This document shows, piece by piece, positions 2,909 through 63,986 of a DNA stretch of 64,000 bases. The DNA comes from Monocercomonoides exilis PA203. Taxonomy: Eukaryota > Protista > Preaxostyla. The stretch's first letter is position 1, and each line of letters begins with the position of its first letter. Under the pieces are notes generated by a model that made no database searches, was not told where the DNA came from, and worked only from the letters and a program-made list of their open reading frames with translations. The DNA lies in NCBI GenBank assembly GCA_001643675.2, contig LSRY02000014.1:496001-560000 (forward strand), read 5' to 3'. The translations under genes were made by a program, and so were the position numbers.

Positions 2909-3491
2909 GATGGAATGAATTCTTGCAATAAATGCAGAAGATACTCAAGAGCAAAAATAAAATTTCTTTGCTAACCATATTATGTTAATAATTCGTCATA
3001 TTATTTCTAATTTGGATTCCTTTGAAAATTCAAGCAAACAAATAAGAAATATGAAATATGTGATAATTTTATGTTCAATTTCAGAATTAATTGAGTATTG
3101 CATTGTATTTTTCATTTTTTTTACAAGTATTTTTTAAAAAACAACATTCCAAACAAATTCATATACAAAAAGATTATCCGTTTCAATAAGCGGATAAAGT
3201 TAAACCTAATAAAAAACTGTGTACCTTCGAAACTTGCAAGCATCATTTATAACATCTATTGGGCTAGATGAATAGAAATATAAGAAGACAAAGTGTACAA
3301 ATCATTCAGCTGAATAAAAAAAATTTGAAGTGTAAAAACATATGCAAATCTACTCAAAACAATTGAAATAAAAACAATACAATAATTAGTCATCAAAACG
3401 AGGCGCAGAAAAAAAAACATATCATGAAAGATCTGAGAAAACTGAAATAAACACAAGTTGATTGCTTTCTCTATGTGTTCCACTCAAAACT

Positions 3492-43777: not shown

Positions 43778-46700
43778 ATGCAAGCATCAAATTGTTTGTT
43801 TGTTGTACTTCTGTCTTTTGCTGTCAACATGGCAACATGTGGAGGTTTGATGGATAATTACTGGTCAAAGGAGAGTGAGGAAATGAGTGAAACATCAAAT
43901 GTGCATCTTTTAATTCCACCTGCTTGCTTGCAGATGCTGCCGAATAACGACAATCCACCGGGGGATATGGAGAAAAATGATGGGAGAGAGAGTCAACACT
44001 GCGGGAGTTCAACTCGAATTGATGTGAGCATACACATAATGAATTCCACTTTTTCAGTATGGAATGTTGAGATTTATGCAAGAGAGAAAATTTCAGTGTT
44101 TTTCATCAACGAATCTTCGATATCTTTGAGCTACTGCTCGATGAAATATTCAGCAAAAAGATGCATTCCTCCATTCGCGCAAACTGGTGGTTGCTTGTGT
44201 TGCGAGAATATTTCACTCACAACATCTGCTGCTGAAAATGGCATTCCTTCGTTGATGGCTTCCCATTTGGTTGGAGATATTTTGATCCAAGAAACATCAA
44301 ACAGAGTGAGTGTATCCAATTCTGCATTTTCGTCTCTGCAACTTCTGTCTTCTCCGTTTCTTTCTTCGTCAGGAAAAGAAGATGTGAATTTGGCAAGATC
44401 TTCATTTTGCAACATGTCGATCGCTTCAGCACAAACAATCAGAATTCCTTCTTCTTTTTCAGAGAGTTTGAATTTGATTTCAGGATGCTCGTTCTGCGAA
44501 GTTTGCGAAGTCTTTTATGGAGGCATTGTTCGATCAATAAACACTGCAGGCACAGCACTGCTTTCATCCAACAACACATATCATCGATGCATCAGAAATG
44601 CAAATGCTAATGCACACTATTCAGGAGAATCAGGACATCAAGTTCTGACACAGTCAGAAACATTTGAAGATGACACATTTGATGGATGCATTTCCCCAGA
44701 TTATGGTGGTGGAATTAATCTATTTCGTTTCAAAGTTCAATTAGTTGTGAGAAGATGCAAGTTTATTTCGTATGCTATAGTCTTATTTCACATATTAAAC
44801 AGATTCATGTTTTTTTTTTATATATTTTCCATTTCTTTTTATTCATTGAATTATATTTCTTAATTTCGTTTGTTTTTAAACAACTCTATGTACACATGTG
44901 AAGTTGCACAGCTCCTCATATTGGAGCCATTTGTGTGAGTGGAGCTTTAGTAGCGAGTATTGGAGAGTCTAATTTTTCTTTTTGCTATTCAACTTCAAAC
45001 GGTGTTGGAGCTGTTCAATGCTATAATACATCTGAAGGATCGGTTCTTCTATTCGGTTGCCTTTTTGATAGATGCAATTCCAGTAACTATTACGCTGGTG
45101 CAGTGAGGTTGGTGAAGATTTTTGGGAAAGATGGAAAGAAAGTTGATCCATTCTTAGTCGATAATTGCACTTTTTTGAAGAACAAAGCAGGATCTTTAGC
45201 GGGAGCCTTATTAGTGGAATACGAACTTGAAACTTCATTTCTTTTGAAAGAATCTGCGTTTCAGAGGAACATAGCTGAAAATGAAGGTGGGGCATTTGTA
45301 ATAAAACAGAACTCATCCGAAGAGATTAGTGGATCGTTAGTATTTGTGAAATATTGCTTTTTTGATGGAAACATTGCAGGAATCGGAAATGGTCATGATG
45401 TTTACATTGTTTATCCGAATTTGATTGACTGTCCATTTGAATTATCATATTCGACCACAGAAAAGCAAAGAGTTTGGTTCAATAGCAGTCAAACATATTA
45501 TGATTCCTGGCTTGGGCTGGGGTTGCTGAAGCGTTATGTTTCCAGCAACGGAAGTGATGCTGAGTTGCTTTGTGGGGAATCGGAAGACAAACCCTGCAAA
45601 ACGATTGAAAGAGCTGTGAGAAATTCAGGATATGCCATGATACAAGGAGTGAAGCTGATGATCTCCATATTTGCTCCACTTGCTTCGATTGACTGTGGAG
45701 AAAAGCACATTGAACTTGCTGGAGAAAGCCATCTTAACTCAATTGTTCGAACACAATCGTTGGAAGCCTCTTCAGTTTTATTCAGCATGTCGAATGGGAG
45801 TTTGATGATAACAGCAATTCAAATCCAACATGATTCAGCAGTACATCCATCTCCACGACTTTTTATGGTAAGCTCTTCCGCAGGAGTGCTTTCTTTGTCT
45901 GATGTTCTCGTTTTATCCCCAGCATCTGAGTCAGGAGGAAGCGAAATAGATTCATCACCATTTGTGTTGAATATGAACTGCATTTCGCTGGAAAATGTGG
46001 AGATTCAGAATATGGTTCTTTCAGTGCCAATCTTCAGTGAAGTTGAACTATCTTCGAGAAATTCTCCAAGAATAGTGAATGTGACCTTTGAGAACATCAC
46101 AAGAGCCACTGGAAGTGGATCTATTTTCTCCAGTTCATTAGATTCTGGAAGTTCTTTTGGCTTGTCAAACACAACGCTGAAAATGTGCTCTTGTGCAAAT
46201 GGCAATGGGGGAGGGATTCACTTTTCGATGCAAACAGGAAGCGAATTGCGAATTGGAGGCAATTCAAATGTGATGTTTGAGTCATGTTCATCACCTGCTG
46301 ATGAAACAAAAAAAGGGAAAGGAGGGGCGATGCATCTGGCATGCCTGAGCAACGAATGCAGTTTCAGGATTGAGCTTTGTGCCTTTGTTGGATGTGATGC
46401 CTGGAGAGGAAAGAATGTATTTGTGGAAGCGCAGAGCCTGTCGAAGGTCATCAGCAATGCATCACTTGGATTTCGTCCCCAAATTGGAATCAACTCGACA
46501 AACTTCGGTGAGTTGAGCGGTATTGAAAGAGGCAATCCTGAGATTATTATTCCGCTTGCCTTGTTTCTGCGAGCTTTTCAGCCACCTGCATATGTGAGTG
46601 GAAAAGCAAATGGAAATGATTTAAGGTTGTGCGGTTATGCTGATTATCCATGCCAAACGATTGAAAAAGCTGCAGAGCATCGGTTTCCAGAATCGAAACG

Positions 46701-49700
46701 AGTTGTGAGGCTTGTGAACACATTTGGATTTGTGGAGGAAATAACTTTGAGCGAGCAGTCATATGAAATAGATTCGAGTGACAAAGCTATTGGATTGAGA
46801 GTGGAGACAATAGAACCAAAAGAGCACGACTGGTTGGTGAAAAACAATGTTACTACAACACTCACAAACATCACCTTTGAGCTGGGGCAATCGATTTCAG
46901 GGCGTTCCACATTTGTATATTCGTTGGCCGGAGACATGAGAATTATTGACTGTGCGATTGATGGGATGGACAATGCAAATACGATTGGGTATATATTTGC
47001 CAGAGCGAGCGGTGGGTATATGCAGATGCTGAGGCTGAGATGTGGGGCTGAGAGAGAGGTGTTGTTTGAAAGTTACATGGTGCTTGTGGATGGAAGTGCG
47101 AAATGCACAATTGATCTATTGACAATGAACAATGTGAGAGCAAGCGGGAGTGGAGGAGTGATCAGAATGGCCACAAGCAATTCAGTATCAATTCAGAATT
47201 GTTCATTTGGAGATTGTGCTTTGGAGAAGAGTGGGATGATTCACATTGAGGTGTGCTCGTTGTTGGAGCTGAAGAACACATCATTTGAAAACATCACGAG
47301 AACAGATGGGGATGGTGCAAGCATTTCTTTGCAAGCAGACGAAGCAAGCAGATTTGTTGTTGATATAGAGAACTGCTCATTGAAAGGATGCGGAGTGTCT
47401 GGAAATGGCAATGGGGGAGGAGGAATGCACGCAGTGCTGGAAAAGGCGAGCGAGTTGTATGTTTCATCGACGAAGCTTGAAGCATGTAGCGCACCCTCAG
47501 GAAGTGGAACGAATGGGAGAGGAGGAGGGATGCTGCTTCATCTTTTGGATGCTGAGGCAAGATTTGAGCTATCAGAAACACTTGTTTTCAGATTGAACGA
47601 GGCAGAGCATGGAGCAGATCTGTTTGTGCAATCTCCAGATTTGGCAACAAGTGTGAGAAAAGAACAGATTCAATTTCCAATTCACATTTCTGATCTCAGC
47701 TCTTTGGCGATGGGAATTGACTCAAAGTGGGGAGATTTGATCATTCCATTGAAATATTACCTTGCAGACGATCCTGAGTGGATGTTCATGAGCAACAGTG
47801 GGGTGGATGTTGTTGTTTGTGGATTTGAAGAGTTCAGGTGCCAAACAGTTGATTATGCATTGAAGAGAGTGATGGGGAAAGAAAGAAAAGTGCGATTTGG
47901 AGAAACGTATTCATTTTCAGAGAGTGTGATACTGAACGAAAGTGAAGGATACGAGTTTTGTGGGGTCGCAACTAGAACAAGGATGGAAATGAAGGGGAAT
48001 GAGACTGGCAGTGAATGCATGATTGAAGTTTTTTCGAGAGTCGAGTTTGAGCTGTTTGTTCACATTCTTGCTGGATCGCTTCCATCTGTTCAAACAAGTG
48101 TGTTTCAAGTATCAGGAGCTGGCGGAGAGTTGCAAATCGAAGATTGTGCAATTGAATGCGAGCCTTCTGTGATTCAGTGCAATTATTCGTTCATTCGCCT
48201 TCAAAGTGGAAGTCTTTCTGTTGCAGGGTTGAGGATAGAAGCTGTGCAGTTTACATCAGCTCCCATCCTGTGCCTGAAAGGAAATGGAAAAGCATTGATA
48301 AATAATGTCTTTATCAGCGATGCGCAAATGATAGACACAAATGGTCTAATTGAGTACACCTCCGAGAATTCACTTTCGCTGGCTAATGTGACAGCACAAA
48401 GCTGTGGAAACAAAAATTGCGGATTCATTAGTGACAGAAAAGGGGGAGATCTTTCGATTGCAAACAGCTCATTTCAGGGTGTGAATGAATTGGAAGGGAA
48501 TGGAAGTGTTGTGAATGGAGTGATTGGTGATGAGTGCAGGATGAGTATTTATGACGTTGAGATTGAAGGCTGTGGAACATCAAAGGGATGCGGGGGAGGA
48601 ATAAGTGTGGTTCTGAAAGGAACAGGAGTGATGAGGCTGGGAATTGTGGAGAGTGAGACATATTTTGGGAAGTGCTCAGCCATTGGCGAAGGATCAGTTG
48701 GGGGATATGGAGGGGGAGTGATGCTGAGGTGTGAGGAAGGAGGAAGAGATTTTGTGATGACGAAGTTGACTTTTGGAACGGAAGAGGCAGCCAATTCAGC
48801 AAGTTTTGGAGGCAAGAATGTGATGATGGAGTGCGAGAGCTTGTCAGAGCTTGTGAATGAAACATCGTTCAATTTTTCGTTTGAGGTTGATGTTGACAAG
48901 AATCCGGATTTGAAGGAGTTGATGGGAATGGAAAATGGAAGTGTTGGTCAGCTGATTCCGCTTGTGGTGCTGTTTCGCGAAAAACCCACAGTTGGATATG
49001 TTCATGGGAGAGATGGAGGAATGGATCACGCAAAGTGTGGGTATTTTGATTTTCCGTGCAGAACACTGAAATATGCAGGGAAAGCCTTGTTTGGAACATC
49101 ATTGGCAGTGCTGCGTCTGCTATCTTCTTTTTCAATTGAAGAAGAAATTGTTATTGATTCACAGACAATGACAATTGACGGAGAGATGCAGATGCAACGA
49201 ATTGTTGTGGATGGATCAGGAGGAGGAGAGAGGGAAAAGGAAAGCATGATTGAAACAATGCAAAATGTGAAATTTTTCAATTTGGCATTTGTTGTTTCAA
49301 GGTTTGCAGAATCGATGAAGAACAGTGTGTTTCTGTGCAGTGGCAACATTTTGAGAATTGAAGGATGTTCATTTGCAACCAAAGAAGGGATAGTTGAGGC
49401 AACATGTGTTTGTTGCAGAGGAGGAAAGATTGAGATGGTGAAATGTGAATTCGGGAACTTTGAGACACTTGGAAAAGGGATGATTGTGATTGATGGTGTT
49501 GGCGTGGAAGGTCTGATTGATGAAGTGACAATTTGGAATGCAATAAGGGAAGGAGGAGGGAGTGTGGTGGAATTGAAGCAGGGGAAGGAAGTAGTGATTG
49601 CAAACTCAACGCTGAAAGAAACAGACTTTGCTTATGGGAATATGTTTGCGATTGGAAATGGAGAGGAGGGATATGGAACGAGTCTGACGATGAAGAACAA

Positions 49701-52700
49701 CACATTTTTGGAGATAACGAGAAATAATGGAAATGGCGGAGTGATGAATGGGGATGCGAGGAATGGAGAATGCATTGAGATTACAAACTGCACTTTTGAG
49801 AAGTGTGGTTGTGAGGCAGATGGTTCAGTGGGAGGAGGAATGGTGATGATTGTGAGAGAAGGAGGGAGGTTTGTGTATGAGCGCAATAAGATGGACAAGT
49901 GCACTGTACCATCTGGAAGTGGAAAGGGAGGAGGGCTGTATGTGAGGTTTGAGAGCACGAACATCACATATTCAATGAAAAACAACGAATTCAGAAACAG
50001 CGTGGCAGAAAAGGGAGATGATGTGTATCTGGTGTGTGAGTCACCATGGCTGATGCTTCTTCCGACATTGTGGTATGGGACAGCCACGAATGCGACAGTT
50101 CAGAAGTTGATGTGGGTTGAAGAGCTTTCTGACGCCAGCAAGGAAGGGTCTATCATAAGCTATTTGTTCCCGTCTTTGGGATCATATATGTTTGTGGATG
50201 GAACAGGGAACGACGGGCAGAACTGTGGATTGAAGGAAAACCCGTGCTTGTCAGTTGATGTGGGGTTTGCTCGGATGAAAGATGAGCATGTGATCATGCA
50301 GCTGGAAGGGGAGGCAGAAGTGAATGGGACAATCAATAGAAACGGAAAATCACTGACGATGCAAGGGAATGATGAGGCACAGAAAATGATTGTTGGGGAG
50401 GAAGGAAAATTTGAGCAGACAGCGGGTGAAGCATTAACGTATTTGATTTTTTCAGTTCTTGAGTTTGTTCTTCCGCGAGCACCGATGAATCTGGCAGAAG
50501 AACAGTCAGTTGTGGAAGTGAGGGTGGGGCAATGCACTTTTGTTGGCTGCACATTTTCTGGTTGTGTGAGTGCGTCGAATGAATGTGGGAAATGGATAGT
50601 TGCTGCGAAAGGAGGATTCGTTCATTTTGACAGGGCTGTGATGAAAGGAGTGCATTTTGGAGGAAGTGGGATTGCAATGTGTAGCGGTGGAAGCACAGCT
50701 TTTGAAAACTGCACAATCGATGATATGCACGCAAATGGTGTTGGGCTTGTTATGAATGAAGCAGGATCTGATGCATCTTTGAAGAACACAACAGTTACGA
50801 AATGCGTTGTGGGGTTGAGCTCATGTTTTGTGTCGAAAAAAGGAGCAAAATTGAGCATCAATGAAGAGAGCTCTTTTGAAGATATTCAAACTGAAAGCAT
50901 GCAAGGCGGATGTATCCGATGCGAATTGGGAATGAATGATCAAATCAAAGTTGAATTTGTATCTTTTATGAAATGTTCAGCTAATAAAAATGAAGGAAGA
51001 GGAGGAAGTGTGTATTTGGATGTGCTGGATGATAGTGAGAACAACATCAGATTTTCAGAAGTGCAATTCAAAGGCAACCAAGCATTTGAAGGGAAGGATT
51101 TGTTTGTCTCGTGCAAAAAACTGAACGAAACGGTGACAAGTGCGGGGTTTGGATTTGAGTATGAGGATGAAGAAGGAGTATTTGTTGATATGAAAGGAAG
51201 GGATCGAGATCGGTTTGAAGAAAGTGTGGATCTTCGGTTGTTTCTTGTTGAAAGAAAGGCGGAGGAAGTGTTTGTGTCTTCAGAGGGATATGATGCAGCT
51301 GGGTGTGGAAGCGAGATTTTTCCTTGCTGTTCTGTGTGGAGTGGAATTAACCATATTGGTGGGAATGAGGTGGGAACTGAAGGGAGACTGGTTGTGATGG
51401 ATGAAAGCAGAGTTGAAGATTGCTTCATGTTTGATGAAGAGATGGCTTTTGATTGCCATGTGAATGAAGAGGAAGAGGTGAAATGGAAGCTGATCCACTT
51501 TTCCAGCTCAATAACAGGGAATAACATGATTTCAGTGATTGCTTCGAGTAATTCACTCAGTTTGCTTTCGCTGAAGCTTGAGATTCCTTCGTTGTTTGAA
51601 GCGAAATTAGCATCATTGATTTTTTCGAGCGGAAAGCTTCGATTTGAGAATTGCACTTTTGCTGTGATGGTGGCAGATGCAGTTGAATACTCGCTTGTGA
51701 AAACAACGAGTGGAACATGCTCGATGATTGGGTGCTCATTGCAATGTTGCCTGTTTGCCATTTCTCCGTTTGTGGTTTCATCTTCGCTGGAGCTTGAACG
51801 CTGCAACTTCTCTCAAATAGAGAATACCGGAGGCAATGAAGGTGGCGTGATGAATGTGATATTGAAAGAAGAAGAATATGTTGCGATCAAGGATATTAAT
51901 TCATCAGTCTGCTCGCTATCTGGTGATCACAACAGAGGAGGGTTTTTGTTTTTGAATTGCCAGAAATGCAGCAGCGGCAACAACGGCATGCCTTTGCTCA
52001 TGGATGTTGGTGTGAAGTTTGACAAGAACAGAGCAGATATTGGAAAGAATGTGTTTATTTTGGCGGCTGATTTGAACAGCACAGTGAGGGTAGATACATT
52101 CAGATTTGATTATGAGTCGATGAAGGAAGACGGATTGCTGTTTGTTGGGAGCGACAACATTCATTCAAACAAAGATTTGCTCATGTTTCTGATTCCGTAC
52201 AGCTCATTTGAGATATTTATCTCATCGGACGGATTTGATGTGGCCCGATGTGGAAGCAAGGAAGAGCCATGCAGAACACTTTGGAAAGGGATGAAAAACA
52301 TGAAAAAGGAGATTGGAATGAAAACGATTCAAATCGAAGGATCAACTATCATTCATGATTCATTCAATGTGTCCAGCTTCAAGTTTGAAAAAGCAGAGAC
52401 AATGGGCGAAGAAAATGAAAAGGCTGTGCTGTTTTTGGAGAAGGCAGTTGAAGATGGACTGGATTGCTATTTGGTGAATCACAAGTCACTTTCGTTCACA
52501 GACATTGCACTTCACTCGGGAACTGGAGTTGATAATGCTTGCAGAACTGCAGTTGCAAATAGAGCTGGGAAGTTGGAAATGACTGGATGTTCATTTCGCT
52601 CAGATGCTCAGCAAAGCACTCCAAGCAGATGCGTGTTTGTGGCGATGGATGCAGGAGAACTGATTGTAAAAGATTTGTCGATGGACTCCGGCAGTGTTGG

Positions 52701-55700
52701 ATGCAGTGTTTTTGTGATCAATGAAGTTGGCGTTGGTTGCACCATGGAGAGTGTTGATTGCTCATCTCTGAATGAAACTGATGGATGTGTTTTCACAGTG
52801 AAGGAAACTGAAGAGCAAATGTGCACGAACAGTGGGAAAGAAATGAGCAGCGTTTTGATTGAGAATTGCTCGTTTGTGGGAATGAAAAGAAAGGATGATG
52901 GAGCAAGTGTGTGTGAGATGAAAGGAGAGAGCGGGATTGAGCTGAGGATTGAGGACAGTTTGTTTGTGGACAACAAAGCAGAAGCAAGCGAGAAAGGCGG
53001 AGTGATGCTATTTGTGTTGAGTGGGTCAGGGGCATTGCGTATTTCGAGATCGACGATAAGTCGGTGCTGTTGCAGCGAGAGTGGGAAAGGAGGAGGGGTG
53101 TATTTGAGGAGCAGAGAAACAGGAAGGCTGAATTTTGTGTTTGAGAAGATGAATTGGGGTGCAAACATAGCAGGTGTGGGGAATGATATTTTTGTTGAGT
53201 GCTACAACATCACGAGCCAGATTAATGAAACGCAGTTTCATTTCGATCTGAGAGAGAAGTATTATGTTCAGCTGAATGCGATATATGGAATAGATGTGAC
53301 TGAGCACACAGGAGACACAAACTTGATCGATTTCATAACGATCCATCAGAGCGATACGATTGTTGTGTCGAGTGAGAACGGGTCGAATGAGCGCCAGTGT
53401 GGTGCGTACTCTCTTCCGTGCTATTCGATTGAATATGGACTGATGCACCTGACTTCAGAGTTCATGAGCCTTGTGTTTGCAGATGGAGCAAGTGTGATCA
53501 ATGGGGAGCTGCAGCTGGAAGAGATGAGTCTGATTTCGAGAGGTCGAGGATTGTGCGTTGTGGAAGTGTGCCCTGCAGTCGAATGTTCCCGAGAGGCTCT
53601 GATAGAAACATCAGGTGCTGTGTCAATTTCAAGACTGAAATTTGTGTTTGAGACTGAATTTGCTTCACTTCATTCTATTCTTCTTTACCCTGTCGGAGGA
53701 TTGCTGGAAGTGGCGAACTGCACATTCAGCACCAAAATCACAGAGGGAATGGGAGAACATGTGCAATCGAGTATTCCATTCTGCATTGTGCGAATTGAGA
53801 GAGGTGAATGCATGCTTGAGGGCTGTGTGGTGTCAGATCTTTCACTCTCTGCTTCAGCTGTCTGTATGCTTCAATCTGCAATCCTTTCCTTGATTTCGTG
53901 TGACTTTTTTGATCTCAGGATGGGAACAAGCCTTATTGATGCAGTTGAAGGAGAGCAGTTGGGAATAGAAAAAATGAGTGCAACAAACATTACATCGTCT
54001 GACGATGGGGCATCGTTGATATCATGTTTGAAAATGAAAAAGATGACACAGCTGACAAATTGTTCATTGAGAAATACACTTGCTGCAAATGGAGAAGGAA
54101 AGGGAAAATGTATTTCTGTGAAGGAGAGTGAAAGCACTGTGATTGAGAGCTGCATTTTTGATGGCAACACAAACGAAAGAGAGTCTGTGAAGATTAGAAA
54201 TATGGATGAAAAAGCAAATGGAAACAATAACAAAAATGAGATATGCAAATGGAATGGATCAGTTGTTGAGGTGAAGGAGAGTTCTGTGGTGATGAAAGAT
54301 ACAACAATCTCAAATTCACATGATGGTGGACTTGCAATTAGTGGAGGAAGCGTAACAATTGAAGCAGGGAATTTCACGAACAACAACCCATCAATTGAAG
54401 GATATTCATCATTGAGAAGAAACATTCTCTGTTCAGATTCAGGAGTGTTGAATGTGATGAATTTGAAAGGAGGAGATGGATTGAAGGATAATTCTTCACT
54501 TTGGATATTGGATGAAGGATGCGAGTTGAGCGGGATGATGGAGGAGAGAGGATCACCACTATTCATCCCAGTTGTGGAAGAGGCGAGGAATGAGACAGGA
54601 TCTGAGGGAAGAACAATCATCACGCTGAGTGGGAGACTTCTTCTACCATGTGATGTTTGGTTGAAGTTGAGCTTCAGGAATGGAAGGGAAGAGGTGGTTG
54701 AGAGCTATGGGATTGGAGAAAAGGAAAGTGAGTCAGAGAACGAAATTGTTGCAGTTGTTTCATCTGTTCAGATGGGAGCAGTGGGAGCAGAGACAGAAGT
54801 GTCTGTGAGTCTTTTGTTTGGAAAGATTGATTCGCCTTCATCGACTGATTCGTTTATCCTGAAGAATAGAAGCGAAACCGAAGGAAAAAGAGATGGCAGA
54901 ATTGCTGAAAGTGGGAAAGAAGGAAAATTCTCATGGGCATTAATTGTGTGCATTGTGATTGTAGTAATACTGTTAATTATATCCATTATATTCATTGTCC
55001 GGTGGAAGAAGGTGAAGAATGAAGCAGAAGATCTGAGAGAGATTGTGAATGATAACATCAGAAAAGATCCGAAGGCATTTGAGATGGTGACGATGGAGAT
55101 GTCACCGGAGGAGCAGTGGAGGAGAGCAGAAAGGGAGGCAGAGAAGAAGAATGAAGAGAGGATAAAGAAGAGGGTGTATGAGAAAAGCTTGGGACACTCG
55201 GAGTCATCAGAGCATTTGCTGAGTGAGAGTGGCTCCACTGAATACATTTTGGGAAGAGACTCGGACAAGATTCCAGAATGGATGCTGGAGAAGGTGGATG
55301 AGAAAGAAGTTGAGGAAGAGACAAGAAAGCGAACGCCATCACCTTCCATTTCATCCACTTCAACCACAGATACTTCAGACACAGAATCCACTTTTGTTCG
55401 AGGGGAGGATCTGTGCCCAACAACCTCATCCATGTCGAATCTGGTGGATGCAATGGCCTGCTCGTCTCCACATGAGAAGCTGATTGTGGATCTGAGGGAT
55501 TCGCTGTTCATGTTGCTTCATGGAAGGAATGAGAAGAAGGAGATGGCGATAGGCACATTGACTGAGAGAGAGCAAACAGCTGCGCAGATCCTGTTCTGGG
55601 TGGCGAATCTGGCACTCCATTCATTTGATGAAATGGAAAATCCACTCCAATCTCTTTCCAATCTCAGTCCCCACATTGTGCTGTTCTCTGAGCACATGGT

Positions 55701-55815
55701 GATCTGCATTGTGATGCATTCAGACTTCTCATCTTCAGACTCAGATTCCTCATCGATCTCATCAACAACAGTTGTGACATCTGCAAGTGATGATAATGAT
55801 GATGATGATGATTGA
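43778..55815 (+). CDS. Giant single-pass surface receptor-like protein (signal peptide, 8 Cys-capped beta-helix-like modules, TM, degenerate kinase), truncated by a retrotransposon
   Basis: join(43778..44769,44904..55815), ~3,967 aa. It has the signal-like MQASNCLFVVLLSFAV, eight V-S-x2-G-x-D-x3-CG-x4-PC-x-T/S anchors, GGG/GGA and FxxN motifs, and a TM segment WALIVCIVIVVILLIISIIFIV (54934-54999) followed by RWKK. The TGA at 55813-55815 is created by the insertion junction. Confidence 0.85.
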
Positions 55816-55830
55816 AAAAGAAAATATGTA

Positions 55831-55893
55831 TCTCACTTCCTTCTCTTTATTTGAGAGCATCACTTAAGGGTCAGTCACCCTGCTGATCTGAAA
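55831..55893. repeat. DIRS inverted terminal repeat (3' end of element)
   Basis: TCTCACTTCCTTCTCTTTATTTGAGAGCATCACTTAAGGGTCAGTCAC..CTGATCTGAAA is the reverse complement of 60340-60403. The first 48 nt match exactly, then a small mismatch patch follows. Confidence 0.93.
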
Positions 55894-56077
55894 TGGAAAA
55901 CATAAAATATTTTCATGTGAATCAAAAATGTTCAAGAAAACTTATAAGAATAATTGTTGATATGTTTTGTTTATTATCAAACTTTAGTGCATTAAACAAG
56001 CGCACCTAAAGAAAAGGAGATGAAAAAGGTGTTTATATATGTATTCTTGAGGGGTGGGAGTGCAACGTGGTGGGAAA

Positions 56078-56180
56078 AAAGAGAAGGAAGTGAGATACAT
56101 ATTTTCTTTTTCAATCAAAGCACATATGCACTTTGATTTTAAAGAAAACATTTTCTCACTTCCTTCTCTTTATTTGAGAG
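56078..56180. repeat. DIRS internal complementary region (ICR)
   Basis: Exact reverse complement of 60377-60444 joined directly to 55814-55848, i.e. a copy of the circularised end-to-end junction. Confidence 0.93.
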
Positions 56181-56231
56181 AATACACATAATTGGGCGTT
56201 TCATAAGATTATTTTAAATTAAATAATCTCA

Positions 56232-59200
56232 TTATTCATCATCATTGAGCAATCTTTCCAGTAGTTCCTTTTTGCACTGGTATCTTGTGCGCACCGAAAG
56301 TTGAATCGTCTTTTCTTGAACAGCCTCAGCTGACGAACAGTAACCTTTCGGGGAAGACTTTTTTCTTTCGCGCAGAACTGGCGTTTGAACCTCTTTGTAG
56401 TTTTGATCCATCTCATCTTCACAGTTATCGCTTGCTGAAGATGATTCGCTGGTGGTGTTGCAATCTGACGTGTCGTCAAAAATAATTTCCTGCTTCTGGG
56501 AAGTGTCCACTGCTGCTGTTTGCGTTAAGGCTTCGTGTTGCACTAGGCTATGTTCCAATGGTGTTGTATTTGTTTGACATGCAATTGTTTTTGCACATGT
56601 CATTGTTACGTCGGAGCGAAAGTAGTGTCTTGAGATCGTGTCACTCTTAGGAGATAGCCTGGCGAATCTTGCAATTTGTGCCACCGGAACTCCGGCCATT
56701 GTTAGTGCGGAAATGGAAGCATGCTTCAACGAATAAGGGCCAAAGTACTCTGGAACTCCTGCTTCAGTTAGGAACTCTTTTGCAAGTTTTCTCAATGACC
56801 TTGCTGATAAGGCGTTCATTTGGTCTTTTCCAACAAATAAATGGACTGGGTTGGATTGTGTTGTATTTTGTCTCTCCCACAACTCTCTGACAGCTGAAGC
56901 CGGACAAATTAGTGGAGAGTCGATCAAGAAGGGAATGATTATGTCTGTTCTTCCGAGAGTTGTTTTTAACGAGGTGTCTAAGGCAATAGAATCTTTTCTA
57001 ATCGAAGAATGAACGAGGTCAATTCTTTCAAGCTCAGTAAACCTGCATGCGGAAAAAAGCATACACAAGCAGATCGTTTTCTTGGTTAATTGTAACAATT
57101 GAAGCTTTGAATTTTCTCCAAGCGTTATGATGTAGTCCAACATGATCTTTGGATTCCAAATCTGCGGCTTATCTTTTTTCTTTCTCCTTTCTGCTCTTTT
57201 GAACGAGCGAAACAACATTTTTATGAGCGGAAACTCACCCAAACATCTGTCGAATAGTAGCTGAGTTAGCATAGACACTGCAGATCTCGTTTGGCACAGT
57301 GATGACACCTTCATTCCCCTATCGCGAAGAGTGATGAAAATATCGGAGCATTTTCCAACCCAATCACTCCACTCATCCGAAGGCGGGCCATATCCACGTT
57401 GAGCCCATTCCGATCCAAAATTAGACAGACCCGACATGTACCCCTCCCACGTTGTTTGTGCTAGACTGGATTTACAAATTTCCATAACGTTGTTTGAGAA
57501 ACCTTTCACTTCGAGGACAGCCTTGAACCATTCTTCGCCAGAGATTGTTACGGGTTGAGAAGGACAACTCTCATTTTCCCTGGCGGAAGGTTGGCTCCTG
57601 TTCGTTTCATCCAAATCCCCGGATTCAGCAGATCCGCTTGGTTCCTCCACGTCCATTCGAATGTCCTCATTCTGTTCAAGATTGGCTCCCAAATCTGTCC
57701 TTTCCAATCTGGCATGAGGAGCAAAACACGCGCTTTTTCTTTTATTGCTTTCATGAGAACTGGGACAATCAGAGGGATTGGAGGATGGGCTAGAACTGTT
57801 TCTCCTTCCCATGGATGTTGAAGCCCGTCTTCGTTTATCAGGCTTCCTGGCCCACACCAGCGCTTCACCTTTTGATTGCATCTTGTTGCAAACGCATCGA
57901 GAGTGAATTTCAGATTCGTCATCTTCTTCAGTACTTGAAATGCTTCCGGTTTGATTGTGTAATCGCCTCCCCTTTCTAGCCTTGACAGGGAGTCCGCTCT
58001 TGTGTTTCTTACTCCTGGTATGTGTTGAGCTTTCACTTGAATTTGGTTTTCGTTTGTTAACCTCCAGATCCTCCTTATTAAAGATCTCAGGTTCGATCCT
58101 GCGTTCCATCGGTTGATGTTGAAAATGGACGTTGAATTGTCCGATCTGATAAGCAGTTTTCTTATGTTCTTTGCTTTTAATGTTGGAAGAAAATTGCTTA
58201 ATGCTTTCCAAATTGCCCACAACTCTCGAAAGTTTGAACTTTGTTTTGTTTGCCAATGAGGGAGAGGGTGATGATAGTCGAGCGTTGTATTTCCCAAGCA
58301 AAGGCATGCTCCCATGGATCTTCCGGACGCGTCTGTTGTCAAGGTTGCTTTGGCCTGGAAGAGGGGGCAAAGGAACCTCGGCTGGTTCCGTTTCAGTCTC
58401 GATATCCATTGCTGAAGACTGTTCATTATTGACGGAGTTATTTTCGTCCTCCCCGACCATCCGGTTTGTCGAACAGTCCTGTTGAGTACTCGATACATCT
58501 GCGTGAGAAGAAGGGATGCCTCCTTGAAAACGAATCTTGTCGAATTGAGTTTTCCGATAAAGGTCGCCAAATCTCTTACCCGAACCTGACTTATACGAAT
58601 TGCTCTTTTTTCCCATTTGCTGCACTCCGAGATTAGTTCCTTCGCCTTTTCTTCTTGCAATCGTACCGTGAAGTTTCTTGTGTCCCACAAAAAGCCGAGG
58701 TACGAGAATGCCTGGGAGGGACTCAATTGACTTTTTTCTTCGTTTATGAGAAGGCCTAACTTGTTGAAAAGGCTGGTGACTTCCTGTGCTGTGTGGCGAA
58801 GAAATTCTGGATTTTTGTGAAGAAGAATAACGTCGTCGAGGTAAGCAATGATCTTGATTTTGAATTTTTGACGAATATACATGACAACTTTCCTCATAAT
58901 TTTTGTAAAAAGCCTCGGGGCGTCTTTGAAGCCAAAAGGCATTCCGTTGAAACAATAGAAGTTTCCGTTGAATTCGAATGAAAGATATGGTGAAAGCTCG
59001 TGATCCACCTTTATCAGATAGTAAGCTTGGTGCAGATCGAACGTGACCGCATAATCCTGCTGCTCTATGATTCTTTCCAATGTTCTGAAATCTTCCAATT
59101 TGAAGTGGACAGATTTGATAGCTTTGTTCAGTTCCCTGCAGTCGATTATCTGTCTCCATCCTCCGGTCTTCTTTTTTATAACAAAAACTGGATTCAAATT

Positions 59201-59537
59201 CTTGACTTTTTCCCGTTGGATCGGTTGGATTATTTTGTTCCTTAATTGTTCTTGAATAAGCTTGCTCATTGCATCCCGCGCTTCTTTTGATTGGTGAGGA
59301 TTGGTCCTGTTGATGTTTTGATTGGACAGTTTCCTCCGCGCTTGTTTGCTCTTCCAAATTGCAAATGCACCTCTTCGTACCAGTTTTGCTCCATCGATTT
59401 TTGACCATTCTTTCCAATGCTCTGCCGTTCTGCCCCCAACAATGTGCGCATCCACGGTTAATTTTGAGTTTGTCCCCTGGATCGTTGCCTGGAATTGCTT
59501 CTGCTGTTGTAAAAATTCGGGCCTCTCTTTCTGGCAA
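56232..59537 (-). CDS. DIRS tyrosine recombinase ORF (YR domain in the C-terminal ~430 aa; N-terminal part overlaps RT in another frame)
   Basis: SAM-like core-binding region (SSLAQTTWEGY..RSAVS), then CRFTEL, SLKT, CPASAV, LFV, YSLKHAS and TISRHY. The listed start is TTG, so the true start is uncertain. Confidence 0.88.
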   Translation of the reverse strand: MPEREARIFTTAEAIPGNDPGDKLKINRGCAHCWGQNGRALERMVKNRWSKTGTKRCICNLEEQTSAEETVQSKHQQDQSSPIKRSAGCNEQAYSRTIKEQNNPTDPTGKSQEFESSFCYKKEDRRMETDNRLQGTEQSYQICPLQIGRFQNIGKNHRAAGLCGHVRSAPSLLSDKGGSRAFTISFIRIQRKLLLFQRNAFWLQRRPEAFYKNYEESCHVYSSKIQNQDHCLPRRRYSSSQKSRISSPHSTGSHQPFQQVRPSHKRRKKSIESLPGILVPRLFVGHKKLHGTIARRKGEGTNLGVQQMGKKSNSYKSGSGKRFGDLYRKTQFDKIRFQGGIPSSHADVSSTQQDCSTNRMVGEDENNSVNNEQSSAMDIETETEPAEVPLPPLPGQSNLDNRRVRKIHGSMPLLGKYNARLSSPSPSLANKTKFKLSRVVGNLESIKQFSSNIKSKEHKKTAYQIGQFNVHFQHQPMERRIEPEIFNKEDLEVNKRKPNSSESSTHTRSKKHKSGLPVKARKGRRLHNQTGSISSTEEDDESEIHSRCVCNKMQSKGEALVWARKPDKRRRASTSMGRRNSSSPSSNPSDCPSSHESNKRKSACFAPHARLERTDLGANLEQNEDIRMDVEEPSGSAESGDLDETNRSQPSARENESCPSQPVTISGEEWFKAVLEVKGFSNNVMEICKSSLAQTTWEGYMSGLSNFGSEWAQRGYGPPSDEWSDWVGKCSDIFITLRDRGMKVSSLCQTRSAVSMLTQLLFDRCLGEFPLIKMLFRSFKRAERRKKKDKPQIWNPKIMLDYIITLGENSKLQLLQLTKKTICLCMLFSACRFTELERIDLVHSSIRKDSIALDTSLKTTLGRTDIIIPFLIDSPLICPASAVRELWERQNTTQSNPVHLFVGKDQMNALSARSLRKLAKEFLTEAGVPEYFGPYSLKHASISALTMAGVPVAQIARFARLSPKSDTISRHYFRSDVTMTCAKTIACQTNTTPLEHSLVQHEALTQTAAVDTSQKQEIIFDDTSDCNTTSESSSASDNCEDEMDQNYKEVQTPVLRERKKSSPKGYCSSAEAVQEKTIQLSVRTRYQCKKELLERLLNDDE
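57548..59455 (-). CDS. DIRS reverse transcriptase - RNase H - DNA N6-adenine methyltransferase-like polyprotein
   Basis: RT: NPVFVIKKKTGGWRQIIDCRELN, FDLHQAY, GMPFGFKDAPRLF, YLDD (58843-58832), NEEKS, YLG. RNase H: TTDAS, SSNFREL, SDN, HIPGVRNTRADSLSR. MT-like: LDAFAT, DGLQHPW, AHPPIPLI. The listed start is GTG. Confidence 0.93.
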   Translation of the reverse strand: MDAHIVGGRTAEHWKEWSKIDGAKLVRRGAFAIWKSKQARRKLSNQNINRTNPHQSKEARDAMSKLIQEQLRNKIIQPIQREKVKNLNPVFVIKKKTGGWRQIIDCRELNKAIKSVHFKLEDFRTLERIIEQQDYAVTFDLHQAYYLIKVDHELSPYLSFEFNGNFYCFNGMPFGFKDAPRLFTKIMRKVVMYIRQKFKIKIIAYLDDVILLHKNPEFLRHTAQEVTSLFNKLGLLINEEKSQLSPSQAFSYLGFLWDTRNFTVRLQEEKAKELISECSKWEKRAIRISQVRVRDLATFIGKLNSTRFVFKEASLLLTQMYRVLNRTVRQTGWSGRTKITPSIMNSLQQWISRLKRNQPRFLCPLFQAKATLTTDASGRSMGACLCLGNTTLDYHHPLPHWQTKQSSNFRELWAIWKALSNFLPTLKAKNIRKLLIRSDNSTSIFNINRWNAGSNLRSLIRRIWRLTNENQIQVKAQHIPGVRNTRADSLSRLERGGDYTIKPEAFQVLKKMTNLKFTLDAFATRCNQKVKRWCGPGSLINEDGLQHPWEGETVLAHPPIPLIVPVLMKAIKEKARVLLLMPDWKGQIWEPILNRMRTFEWTWRNQADLLNPGIWMKRTGANLPPGKMRVVLLNP

Positions 59538-60333
59538 ACGTCCGGGGCTCTGAACGAAAAAACTGTTTATTTGAAACGTTAGATATAAATGGTTTCGAGT
59601 ATTTCCTTTTACTGTTGTAATAGCTAGGCGCGATATGAATATTTCTTAATACGTGAAACTGCTCTTTTCTTTCTTGTTTCTTTGATTCTTCAAGAAGTTC
59701 TGCTTGTCTTTTTGTGAGGAGAGTCGAAGAAAATTCGTCCTTCATCTTTGCAGCCTCTGTAAACCCAAATCGCGCTTGTATACGCACATGTCTTGCTTCC
59801 TTTAACGCCTTTCCAAGGAGGAGACAAGCATCTGCAATCATTTTTCGTATTGGATCTTCATCGGAAGTCATTGCATGGGAAGATAGTAACAGTTTCATCA
59901 TTGGGTATAAAAATGTCTCGGCTCTTTCTCCCGCTCTATCCAAGGCATCCTTGTACGGGCTTGTTGTTCTTGAAAATGGAGGTGGAGCGTTCGGTAAAAA
60001 TGGAGATAGATCTTCGCACTTTAAGGTGGAAACTATTTCTGTGATCTCAATCTCTGGAAGAGGCATGTCATATAGGGAAATTTCTGGTGATCTTCCAAAA
60101 ATATCAACGAAGGATTTCTCTAGGTTAATACCCTGGTCAGCAGGCGAGTCGGAGTCAATAGAATCTTCTTTCATTTCAGGTGCAACCTGAGAAGACGATG
60201 GAAGAGAGGGAATAGATGATGGAGAGGGAAAAGTTTCCGAAAAAGAAGGGAAACTACTTGTTGGACCACCTGTCAGCGTTGCTGAGTTAGGTTCGGCCGC
60301 AAGTCCAACTCCTAAGGTGGAATTTAATAACAT
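59458..60333 (-). CDS. DIRS gag-like ORF1
   Basis: ATG-initiated 291-aa ORF starting 7 nt inside the 5' ITR boundary. It has a helical core and a basic C-terminus. The call is positional. Confidence 0.75.
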   Translation of the reverse strand: MLLNSTLGVGLAAEPNSATLTGGPTSSFPSFSETFPSPSSIPSLPSSSQVAPEMKEDSIDSDSPADQGINLEKSFVDIFGRSPEISLYDMPLPEIEITEIVSTLKCEDLSPFLPNAPPPFSRTTSPYKDALDRAGERAETFLYPMMKLLLSSHAMTSDEDPIRKMIADACLLLGKALKEARHVRIQARFGFTEAAKMKDEFSSTLLTKRQAELLEESKKQERKEQFHVLRNIHIAPSYYNSKRKYSKPFISNVSNKQFFRSEPRTFARKRGPNFYNSRSNSRQRSRGQTQN

Positions 60334-60339
60334 TTATTT

Positions 60340-60403
60340 TTTCAGATCAGTGATCGTGACTGACCCTTAAGTGATGCTCTCAAATAAAGAGAAGGAAGTG
60401 AGA
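60340..60403. repeat. DIRS inverted terminal repeat (5' end of element)
   Basis: Reverse complement of 55831-55893. Confidence 0.93.
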
Positions 60404-60439
60404 AAATGTTTTCTTTAAAATCAAAGTGCATATGTGCTT

Positions 60440-63400
60440 TGATTCTCTGCCTTCATCAGCGTTTGAGGATGAGGATGATTTCAGGAAGGAGTGTTTGAGG
60501 TGGAAGGCGCCAGAGCTGCTGGTGAACAAAAACATGGGAGCGACAAAGGAGTCGGTATCGTTCTCGATTGGGATGATGCTGTGGGAATGTCTGACGCTGG
60601 AGATTCCGTTTGGAGAGTATGGAGCAGAGGTGGCGGGGCAGAAGATTGTGAATGGGGAGAAGCCGGATGTGAGGAGGGTGGGCGGGAGCAGCTTGGCGGG
60701 TGTGGTGAAGGGGTGCCTGTCGCAAGACTGGGGGCAGCGGCCGAGTGTGAACGAGCTGAAGCGGGAGTTTATTGTGCGGTTTCCGAAAGGGGCAGCAATC
60801 ATGACGATGACAGACGCGATCTGTGTTCGGGAAGAGTCCATGGCTGGGCTGAACAGAAGCAGAATCAGCGAGTCAGAGGAGTGAGAGGATGTGGATTGGA
60901 AGTTGGCAAGCAGGAGAGCAGAGGAGCAGGAGAGCAATGAAACTGAGACAATGAAGACGATGTGAGGTGTTTTTACCATTTACAACAACATCCTCCAAAA
61001 ATAGAGCATCGAGAGGAATTGGGCAGGAGAAATGAAAAAGGAGGATGATTGAAAGGGAAATGGCTGTTGGGGCAGAAGCCTTTGAGAGGAATGGGCATGG
61101 TGAAAGGAGGAGAGATGAAGTGATGCACCTCTTCAAAAAAAGAGTCAGAAGGAAAAGATGAGCTGGATTTGCTTGAAGGAAGCGAGCCAACTTTGTGGAA
61201 CGGGGTTGTGGAACGGGGCTGAGGAGAGTTTTATTTTTCTGTCAGATTTTCAACACAAATTATTTTATTGTTTTTTCATTTTTCTTTATTTGCTTGTTTT
61301 TCAAAGTTTGTTGTGGAGCAGCATGATTTGCGAGTTGTGCTGCCTGTTTGCGTTATTGAAAAAAAGGAATGCTTTGAGTGTATTTCAGTTCTGTGTGTTC
61401 GATATTTGGAATTATTTGTTCATAGTCATCACATATCTGTATGTATTTTCTGTTGCATCATGAAAACAACATTCGTTTGAGCGTAGCTTTCTTAGAAAGC
61501 ATGGCTAACGATAATTCAATTCATTTTAAATGATTCGTAATGCTTCGACAACGTCTGCTTCACTTATCATGTGTCTAAATTCTTTCGTTTTTAAAGAAAA
61601 AAAATAGGATGAGCATTTTTATATGTGGATATTTTTTTCTCCCCCAAAAAGATAGTGACAAAATAAATGTGAATCAAAAATGAACAAAACAAGCTGGAGT
61701 ATGTATTTATAACTTATTTTGTGTTCGCAATAAAAAATATGTCTTGATTTATTTTGTTTCACAAGAAAGATCTCGAAAATTTACTGTTGTTTGATTTCCT
61801 TCTTATCATTTGATTTGCTGAGTATGTTGATTAGAACGCAGATGCACTGGGATATGATGGTGTTGCAAATTCGATGAGTTTTTTTTTGTTTGCTGGCAGA
61901 CAGATTTTTCATCTTTCTGCTTCATTATGCAGAAAATGTCAATATTGTCAAATCATTTGTTATTTTTTTTTTCTGATTTGTGGATTGAAATATCATGTTG
62001 ATTGATTGTTAATTTTGTGTTTGTTGATTTTGGTTATTCCAGTCTTTTTCATTATCTTGTATTTTTTCTCCATCAATTTTTTATTTCAAACAACATTATT
62101 TCTTTTTATTTGAAATGCAAAATGCATCCACATAAAAAATCTCTTGTGTTTCAATGTTGTTCATTACTAAAAATGGATGATCATTATTGGCACTGTTCAT
62201 TATCTTTCTTAAAATTCATTAACTCTGTGTGGATTTTCAAAGTTCATCTAACAAATAAATAAACGAGCAATTTTTCACATTCGCAAACAATGAAAACATT
62301 TCATTTTGGATTTCAGATTGCGTTCGTTGAATTTTTTTTTCATTTTTTTGAAATCATTCTTTTCGCTAATTAAAATGAATAACAGAATCGAATTAATAAA
62401 GATATAACAATGATTTCGAATAATTCATTTTTCCATTCAATCAACAAATCAGAAAAAAAAAATAACAAATGATTTGACAATATTGACATTTTCTGCATAA
62501 TGAAGCAGAAAGATGAAAAATCTGTCTGCCAGCAAACAAAAAAAAACTCATCGAATTTGCAACACCATCATATCCCAGTGCATCTGCGTTCTAATCAACA
62601 TACTCAGCAAATCAAATGATAAGAAGGAAATCAAACAACAGTAAATTTTCGAGATCTTTCTTGTGAAACAAAATAAATCAAGACATATTTTTTATTGCGA
62701 ACACAAAATAAGTTATAAATACATACTCCAGCTTGTTTTGTTCATTTTTGATTCACATTTATTTTGTCACTATCTTTTTGGGGGAGAAAAAAATATCCAC
62801 ATATAAAAATGCTCATCCTATTTTTTTTCTTTAAAAACGAAAGAATTTAGACACATGATAAGTGAAGCAGACGTTGTCGAAGCATTACGAATCATTTAAA
62901 ATGAATTGAATTATCGTTAGCCATGCTTTCTAAGAAAGCTACGCTCAAACGAATGTTGTTTTCATGATGCAACAGAAAATACATACAGATATGTGATGAC
63001 TATGAACAAATAATTCCAAATATCGAACACACAGAACTGAAATACACTCAAAGCATTCCTTTTTTTTCAATAACGCAAACAGGCAGCACAACTCGCAAAT
63101 CATGCTGCTCCACAACAAACTTTGAAAAACAAGCAAATAAAGAAAAATGAAAAAACAATAAAATAATTTGTGTTGAAAATCTGACAGAAAAATAAAACTC
63201 TCCTCAGCCCCGTTCCACAACCCCGTTCCACAAAGTTGGCTCGCTTCCTTCAAGCAAATCCAGCTCATCTTTTCCTTCTGACTCTTTTTTTGAAGAGGTG
63301 CATCACTTCATCTCTCCTCCTTTCACCATGCCCATTCCTCTCAAAGGCTTCTGCCCCAACAGCCATTTCCCTTTCAATCATCCTCCTTTTTCATTTCTCC

Positions 63401-63986
63401 TGCCCAATTCCTCTCGATGCTCTATTTTTGGAGGATGTTGTTGTAAATGGTAAAAACACCTCACATCGTCTTCATTGTCTCAGTTTCATTGCTCTCCTGC
63501 TCCTCTGCTCTCCTGCTTGCCAACTTCCAATCCACATCCTCTCACTCCTCTGACTCGCTGATTCTGCTTCTGTTCAGCCCAGCCATGGACTCTTCCCGAA
63601 CACAGATCGCGTCTGTCATCGTCATGATTGCTGCCCCTTTCGGAAACCGCACAATAAACTCCCGCTTCAGCTCGTTCACACTCGGCCGCTGCCCCCAGTC
63701 TTGCGACAGGCACCCCTTCACCACACCCGCCAAGCTGCTCCCGCCCACCCTCCTCACATCCGGCTTCTCCCCATTCACAATCTTCTGCCCCGCCACCTCT
63801 GCTCCATACTCTCCAAACGGAATCTCCAGCGTCAGACATTCCCACAGCATCATCCCAATCGAGAACGATACCGACTCCTTTGTCGCTCCCATGTTTTTGT
63901 TCACCAGCAGCTCTGGCGCCTTCCACCTCAAACACTCCTTCCTGAAATCATCCTCATCCTCAAACGCTGATGAAGGCAGAGAATCA
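60440..63986. repeat. Near-identical inverted duplication (arms ~60440-61989 and ~62437-63986, spacer ~450 bp)
   Basis: Mirror ORFs are identical on both sides (60491..60940 vs 63486..63935; 60873..61190 vs 63236..63553). The differences I noticed were homopolymer lengths (A7 vs A8 near 61359/63060) and a mismatch at the inner edge. Confidence 0.93.
60444..60884 (+). pseudogene. Orphaned 3' end of the 43778 receptor gene (kinase subdomains VIII-XI)
   Basis: SLPSSAFEDEDDFRKECLRWKAPELL..SVSFSIGMMLWECLTLEIPF..CLSQDWGQRPS. It continues the reading frame of 55812 if the element is removed. Confidence 0.9.

Follow-up and report, generated by a model that had tools for sequence, protein, structure and literature searches.

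Insertions of young DIRS1-like retrotransposons in Monocercomonoides exilis point to conservative exchange at one obligatory T with a soft target preference

In a stretch of 64,000 nucleotides of the Monocercomonoides exilis PA203 genome (the window; contig LSRY02000014.1, positions 496,001–560,000 of the forward strand), a retrotransposon interrupts a gene, and a neighbouring copy of that gene carries the same site unoccupied. The locus raises the question of how the element was integrated and of how much sequence a target must have in common with the donor. The first-pass annotation had proposed a conservative crossover between identical 5-nt TGATT cores of donor and target. From the window copy, further copies in the genome and their unoccupied counterparts, we consider it probable that this is a young DIRS1-like insertion made by conservative exchange of the equivalent of a circle defined by the element's internal complementary region (ICR), with a point crossover, one obligatory T and a soft target preference.

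The left junction carries TGATT at 55809–55813 on the plus strand, with GAAAAAG following from 55814, and the right junction carries TGATT at 60440–60444, also on the plus strand, preceded by GTGCTT (60434–60439) and followed by CTCTGCC. The circle junction GTGCTT-TGATT-GAAAAAG was located in the ICR at 56106–56123 on the minus strand, and the unoccupied paralogous site has its one TGATT at 63982–63986 of the minus strand, where the palindrome arm 62436–63986 has its outer end. All four strings on which the first-pass annotation was built (left junction, right junction, circle junction in the ICR and empty form) were recovered in the window where it had placed them, and the chance expectation for the 18-mers, as estimated from shuffles, is close to nil (0.00 and 0.01 matches). 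The span given in that annotation (55795–55820) takes in the left junction. In the alignment with the paralog (locus L032), the left flank ends at 55813 opposite position 3008 and the right flank starts at 60445 opposite position 3009, so that the filled copy exceeds the empty copy by exactly the element plus one TGATT. Comparison with the other copies described below indicates that the left-junction TGATT is target sequence through its fourth base (T) and that its fifth base, T, can be element-derived; at the right junction, all 19 copies have TGAT from the element and the fifth base from the target.

The unoccupied form with a single TGATT is real, but it is a paralog, the neighbouring inverted, tail-to-tail copy, and not the empty allele for which it had been taken. 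Between −453 nt and about +1,550 nt relative to the site, the two copies agree at every base bar one 1-nt indel in the right arm; the first differences lie further upstream, with 97% identity across the left 1.5 kb, and this near-identity around the site makes the paralog a good stand-in for the pre-insertion state. Among the assembled contigs of public runs, those of the empty form stop at 60440 and are inseparable from the paralogs, and they give no sign of an allele. The palindrome arms (60440–61989 and 62436–63986) mirror each other across a 446-nt spacer, and the gene in the second arm runs past the end of the window (L032). The near-identical stretch of approximately 2.0 kb in these arms, from −453 nt to the spacer, looks like the outcome of gene conversion between the arms, of which one alone carries the DIRS insertion.

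The inserted element is a DIRS1-like tyrosine-recombinase retrotransposon of 4,626 nt, counted without either TGATT, which occupies 55814–60439 with its sense strand on minus. Its 48-nt inverted terminal repeat at 55831–55878 is 100% complementary to the second inverted terminal repeat at 60356–60403, and outside the former lies an extension (55814–55830) which matches the ICR only. The ICR (56075–56183) consists of a left-end complement of 43 nt (56075–56117; 98%) and a right-end complement of 71 nt (56113–56183; 99%), and the overlap of the two halves, AATCA (56113–56117), is the circle junction. Inverted terminal repeats combined with an ICR built from both termini are the arrangement by which DIRS1-like elements are recognized and told apart from PAT and Ngaro elements, which have split direct repeats, and the same layout is common to the related families B, C and D introduced below. 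A further, terminal inverted repeat, AATCAAAG-N10-CTTTGATT, is found at 60419–60444, and its outer arm ends exactly at the crossover. It is kept as AATCAAAG-N8-10-CTTTGATT in families A, B and D, and in family C it reads AATCAAAA/TTTTGATT, with both arms changed and the pairing preserved; the repeat is a candidate site of recombinase binding or of folding.

All coding regions of the element lie on the minus strand. ORF1 (59458–60333; 291 aa) is in the gag position and has no Pfam match. The adjacent ORF (57548–59455) encodes a reverse transcriptase (RVT_1, E = 2e-31) together with RNase H, as DIRS1-like elements do, the RNase H family matches at residues 356–492 of the same ORF being weak, and a putative Dam-like methyltransferase, for which the family match (E = 1e-3, 19.3 bits) is below the cut-off and the position, downstream of the reverse transcriptase and RNase H, is that expected for the methyltransferase domain that sets DIRS1 and PAT elements apart from Ngaro and VIPER. 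The putative tyrosine-recombinase domain (56661–57107), of the kind that DIRS elements have in place of a DDE integrase, lies inside a long frame (56232–59537) and was recognized by a Pfam Phage_integrase match of 22.3 bits (E = 1.3e-4), which is under the curated 27.1 bits; a sequence search of the PDB with this domain gave no match to any solved structure. Its translation (...ACRFTEL...SLKHASISAL...SRHYFR...) shows the pattern R...KHAS...RHY, in which KHAS stands in the place of the usual H-x-x-R box and the second arginine is absent, and the window recombinase looks non-canonical in this respect. At 56294–57021, the recombinase end, the element is matched with zero mismatches by contigs from an RNA-seq library that bears the label 'synthetic metagenome'; these contigs leave the remainder of the element uncovered and may reflect transcription or carried-over DNA.

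The gene that was hit is a giant intronless ORF on the plus strand (44935–55815; 3,626 aa) of a receptor-like, kinase-tailed multicopy family with at least 40 paralogs (77–97%), and it is cut short by the insertion, which creates a premature TGA stop across the left junction (55813–55815). The rest of the interrupted gene (60444–60881, plus strand) encodes the C-terminal lobe of a protein kinase (PF07714, 2.8e-8). The match covers the C-lobe only (profile positions 164–257), downstream of the poly-Asp run, and a search of the 500 aa before the site (54313–55812) revealed no kinase N-lobe, giving weak matches of the membrane-segment type only, so that the label of receptor kinase is owed to the C-lobe match alone and the gene tail may represent an incomplete or strongly diverged kinase. 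The M. exilis genome has been noted for its very large tyrosine-kinase family (PMC8767320). For the host gene, the event amounts to an ordinary knockout of one member among dozens of family copies.

The position of the insertion at the end of a (GAT)n run had led to the suggestion that such runs, the one in this gene family among them, could attract insertions. This suggestion did not survive the comparison of copies: the window copy is the one insertion among 19 that lies in such a run, and genome-wide the site GATGATGATT-CTCT[G/T]CC is unoccupied in 25 cases and occupied in one, which is not the behaviour of a hotspot. Six of the 19 insertions lie in the receptor-like family, approximately the genome share of the repeats of this family according to PMC8767320 in what is an informal comparison.

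Further termini were located with blastn-short, and 19 independent insertions from four families in this one genome were counted, families C and D contributing three events each. Family A consists of the window copy, L002 (97% identical to the window copy) and L003 (93%). Family B comprises eleven copies (L007 and L011–L020) at about 67% identity to family A, ten of which are 99.4–99.9% identical to one another (L007 was outside that comparison). Family C (L021–L023; 92–97% mutually) and family D (L008–L010; 96–99% mutually) are at about 64% and about 66% identity, respectively, to the window copy. L020 was left out of the counts as it duplicates L011 including the flanks, and the degenerate or ICR-deleted relatives L004, L005 and L006, as well as L024, the left end of which is missing from the fetched locus, were left out of the target logo. 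L011 (C57) and L020 (C95, a 27.5-kb contig) carry the same family B insertion with the same flanks at 99.4% identity, and represent either an uncollapsed haplotype or duplicate contig or a recent segmental duplication. More distant DIRS-like fragments, at 64–69% identity to the window copy, are found at C8:1468430-1475353, C77:401-9644, C7:1407070-1451446 and C91:1722400-1723983 (G000); some form close inverted pairs, which hints at clusters or nested insertions.

Across the four families, the ICR junction has the common form ...TT-TGATT-[G/A]AAA..., and neither element end lacks a single base in any of the 19 copies. The right element end reads ...TTTGAT in 19 of 19, with T (13), C (3), G (2) or A (1) as the next base. 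TT closes the left flank in 19 of 19, and the three bases before vary (TCTTT, TCATT, TAATT, TCCTT, TACTT, AGCTT, ATTTT and others); full TGATT is present there in three copies, namely the window copy, L017 and L021. The crossover was taken as the point CTTTGAT^TG, and the 19 targets were reconstructed around it. Position −1 of the target is T in 19/19, and T is also common further upstream, at −6, −5 and −4 (12, 13 and 15 of 19, respectively). Position −3 is mostly C (9) and does not match the G of the junction, position −2 is A or T (15) and never G, position +1 is T in 13/19 and position +2 is a purine in 16/19. To the right of +2, the 19 insertions show no signal.

Thus, the target resembles the donor arm CTTTGAT^TG loosely, with a soft preference TTT-N-W-T^T-R. 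The mean overlap between target and junction is 2.9 nt, against 1.86 nt expected at random T sites (P about 5e-4), and overlaps of at least 5 nt occur in 4/19 (P about 1e-3), with 2 nt or fewer in 11/19. The annotation had called for the flanks of all copies to be collected into a target logo. For the 19 insertions, the logo bears out a favouring of junction-like targets, with a single T as the one invariant position in place of the core that had been envisaged. Given this soft preference, targets with full TGATT are over-represented and are not required, and the window target is one of the better matches to it.

The filled and empty forms were further compared at four other insertions, the unoccupied sites being taken from paralogs, as many of the insertions are in multicopy genes. 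For L016, a family B copy, three concordant paralogs give the empty site as ...ttttccTcaa..., which has one T in common with the junction; the filled site reads ...ttttccT-TGAAAAAG on the left and ...TTTGAT-caa on the right. The empty site of L002, ...attattTcaaac... (...ttTca...), likewise has one T in common with the junction. At the other extreme, the target of L017 carries TTTGATTG, an 8-nt match to the junction. For L007, a family B copy on the same contig as the window, the unoccupied paralogous site lies in the window itself at 50752/50753 on the minus strand and has 2–3 nt in common with the junction, one base differing between the paralogs. A candidate pair at L012 was dropped, the paralogs being too diverged at the site. 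In all five pairs, the extra DNA is one circle as written by the ICR, with zero duplicated, deleted or filler bases, and with the absence of a target-site duplication that characterizes DIRS elements; in four of these pairs, the empty site is provided by paralogs of 80–92% identity, which are not true alleles and in which single site bases could have changed. The donor is equivalent to the ICR-defined circle and its insertion is conservative, and the earlier claim that no base is gained or lost beyond the circle holds for the window copy and extends to the four further pairs.

Two of these loci merit separate description. L002 (C14, family A) and L017 (C2, family B) are insertions approximately 76 nt apart in paralogous sequences, and each locus serves as the empty site of the other. 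L016 (G000:C8:329283-333970 plus L049) lacks approximately 320 nt including the entire ICR; the deletion falls between two direct copies of an inverted-terminal-repeat segment, of which the first lies at the left end and the second at the inner ICR edge. Without an ICR, this copy is not expected to be able to restore its termini. Its host is another member of the kinase-tailed family, in which the equivalent poly-Asp site lies approximately 1.1 kb upstream of the insertion.

In the mechanism that we favour, the ICR would set how the two termini are joined (...CTTTGATTGAAAAAG...), as in the model of Cappello and of Goodwin and Poulter, and the joined form would then enter by conservative exchange, the genome gaining one circle length without any base being duplicated or lost. 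The exchange would act as a point crossover, the left junction having target sequence to the left of the point and element sequence to the right of it, and the right junction being its mirror image with element on the left and target on the right. The sole base in which target and donor would have to be identical is the T before the crossover point. Catalysis by the encoded tyrosine recombinase and the physical form of the donor are what we infer; intermediates, circular or otherwise, were not seen.

The requirement that had been proposed for the window copy, namely attP × attB-type recombination between identical 5-nt TGATT sequences in the donor circle and the target, draws on the targets of the window copy, L017 and L021, in which full TGATT is present, and on the enrichment of TGATT-bearing targets above chance. 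However, the left flanks of the other 16 of 19 insertions are without TGATT, the empty sites of L016 and L002 have one base in common with the junction, and the 99.4–99.9% identical copies of family B show the same non-TGATT pattern, which makes mutation of the flanks since insertion an unlikely cause. The annotation had itself held that copies sharing only 2–3 nt of the core would speak against an identical core, and with 11 of the 19 sharing 2 nt or fewer, such a requirement is extremely improbable. The textbook account, in which exchange takes place at an identical trinucleotide, was derived from comparisons of element ends. In its published version for DIRS1-like elements, the trinucleotide common to circle junction and target is NTT, most often ATT (PMC3266345), and would be ATT here. 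This account is very unlikely to hold as it stands, since ATT is found on both sides in six of the 19 insertions and fails to be so in 13, and four young or well-supported cases have it on neither side (TTT/ATC, CTT/ATC, CTT/ATG and TTT/ATC); the empty sites of L016 and L002, ...ccTca... and ...ttTca..., also go against an ATT rule.

The insertions could also have arisen without any site-specific recombination, either from linear double-stranded cDNA end-joined by the host into breaks with 1–8 nt of microhomology, or through a nuclease that leaves a 1-bp duplication of T. The range of overlap lengths, 1–8 nt, is indeed microhomology-like, and the main DIRS-1 intermediate in Dictyostelium is a linear single-stranded cDNA (PMC7192593). 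Against end joining, the five empty sites are all exact, without deletion or filler, the 19 copies have ends complete to the base, and the invariant T with TTT upstream indicates the specificity of an enzyme. The 1-bp duplication of T was ruled out because closing the inserted DNA restores the ICR junction with its two Ts, an outcome that such a duplication would not produce. Taken together, an origin without site-specific recombination is most unlikely. For the conservative point exchange that we prefer, two mechanisms remain: a very short stagger, or exchange of one strand followed by replication. In a speculative form of the latter, which we regard as a minor possibility suggested by analogy, DIRS elements might not enter as double-stranded circles by way of a matched overlap; base pairing between the ICR and the joined termini might give the single-stranded cDNA its sole duplex site, the recombinase would exchange a single strand with the chromosome at T^T and replication would complete the insertion. 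If true, this route would explain the one-base point crossover, the always-intact ends and the mainly single-stranded DIRS-1 cDNA in Dictyostelium.

The Goodwin–Poulter model, at which the first-pass annotation in effect arrived again from sequence alone, and the type of element are already known. What is modestly new is the direct multi-site test, in which the 'identical trinucleotide' of the model is reduced to as little as one base. To our knowledge, DIRS integration has never been tested biochemically, and the specificity of the DIRS recombinase has been stated as not investigated (PMC7192593). Also modestly new is the occurrence of intact, recently active DIRS1-like families in the oxymonad lineage, in which the existence of DIRS1-like elements was considered uncertain in a 2011 survey (PMC3266345); the report of the M. 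exilis genome (PMC8767320) makes no mention of DIRS elements, and a full-text literature search found no paper naming Monocercomonoides exilis together with DIRS. The combination of several recently active DIRS1-like families with a huge paralogous gene family makes the integration rule checkable base by base. The identity of one T and the one-sided T-rich preference constrain the possible chemistry and supply concrete substrates for work in vitro.

Classical tyrosine recombinases of the λ type need a matching overlap of 6–8 bp between the two partners. As in the attP × attB reaction of λ integrase, the exchange at the M. exilis sites is conservative and reciprocal, without duplication, and donor and target of the window copy have a short sequence in common; the donor is circular on both sides of the analogy, being known here only as the circle equivalent read from the ICR. 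The likeness to attP × attB drawn in the first-pass annotation is therefore sound for the conservative, circle-equivalent insertion and fails for the matched identical core, which is present over 5 nt in three of the 19 targets; unlike λ, 11 of the 19 share 2 nt or fewer, and identity of one base is unusual for this class. The Tn916 and CTnDOT integrases use many sites that resemble one donor arm, with little or no identity at the crossover, and leave heteroduplex 'coupling' sequences. The M. exilis targets similarly resemble one donor arm; however, a Tn916-like heteroduplex with a 3–7 nt overlap, which predicts that approximately half of the copies have an element end replaced by target sequence, was rejected, as this is seen in 0/19.

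In the integron attC × attI reaction and in CTX-phage integration, a single-stranded folded donor exchanges one strand and replication resolves the product. A point crossover beside TT and a very short target requirement, which for CTX and integrons applies at secondary sites, are features that the M. exilis insertions have in common with these systems, and the donor here could by analogy be single-stranded with a local duplex formed by the ICR paired to the joined termini; the comparison is one of analogy only. Cryptons, which are eukaryotic DNA transposons with a tyrosine recombinase, also insert without duplication, with a proposed short identity between circle and target; unlike these, which have no reverse transcriptase, inverted terminal repeats or ICR, the M. 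exilis elements are retroelements with all three. The closest correspondence is with DIRS1-like elements, with which they have in common a gag-like ORF, an ORF for reverse transcriptase, RNase H and a putative methyltransferase, an overlapping ORF for a putative tyrosine recombinase, inverted terminal repeats that are extended on their outer side, an ICR whose two halves complement the termini and share a short circle junction containing ATT, and the absence of a target-site duplication. In the integration model for DIRS1-like elements (Cappello et al., 1985; Goodwin & Poulter, 2001; Piednoel et al., 2011), a circle is integrated at a 3-bp NTT/ATT junction without target-site duplication (PMC3266345; the circle-integration model without duplication is also given in PMC7192593). 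Unlike this model, in which the same 3 bp are present in the target, the M. exilis insertions invariably have one T in common with their targets, together with a directional T-rich preference 4–6 nt upstream.
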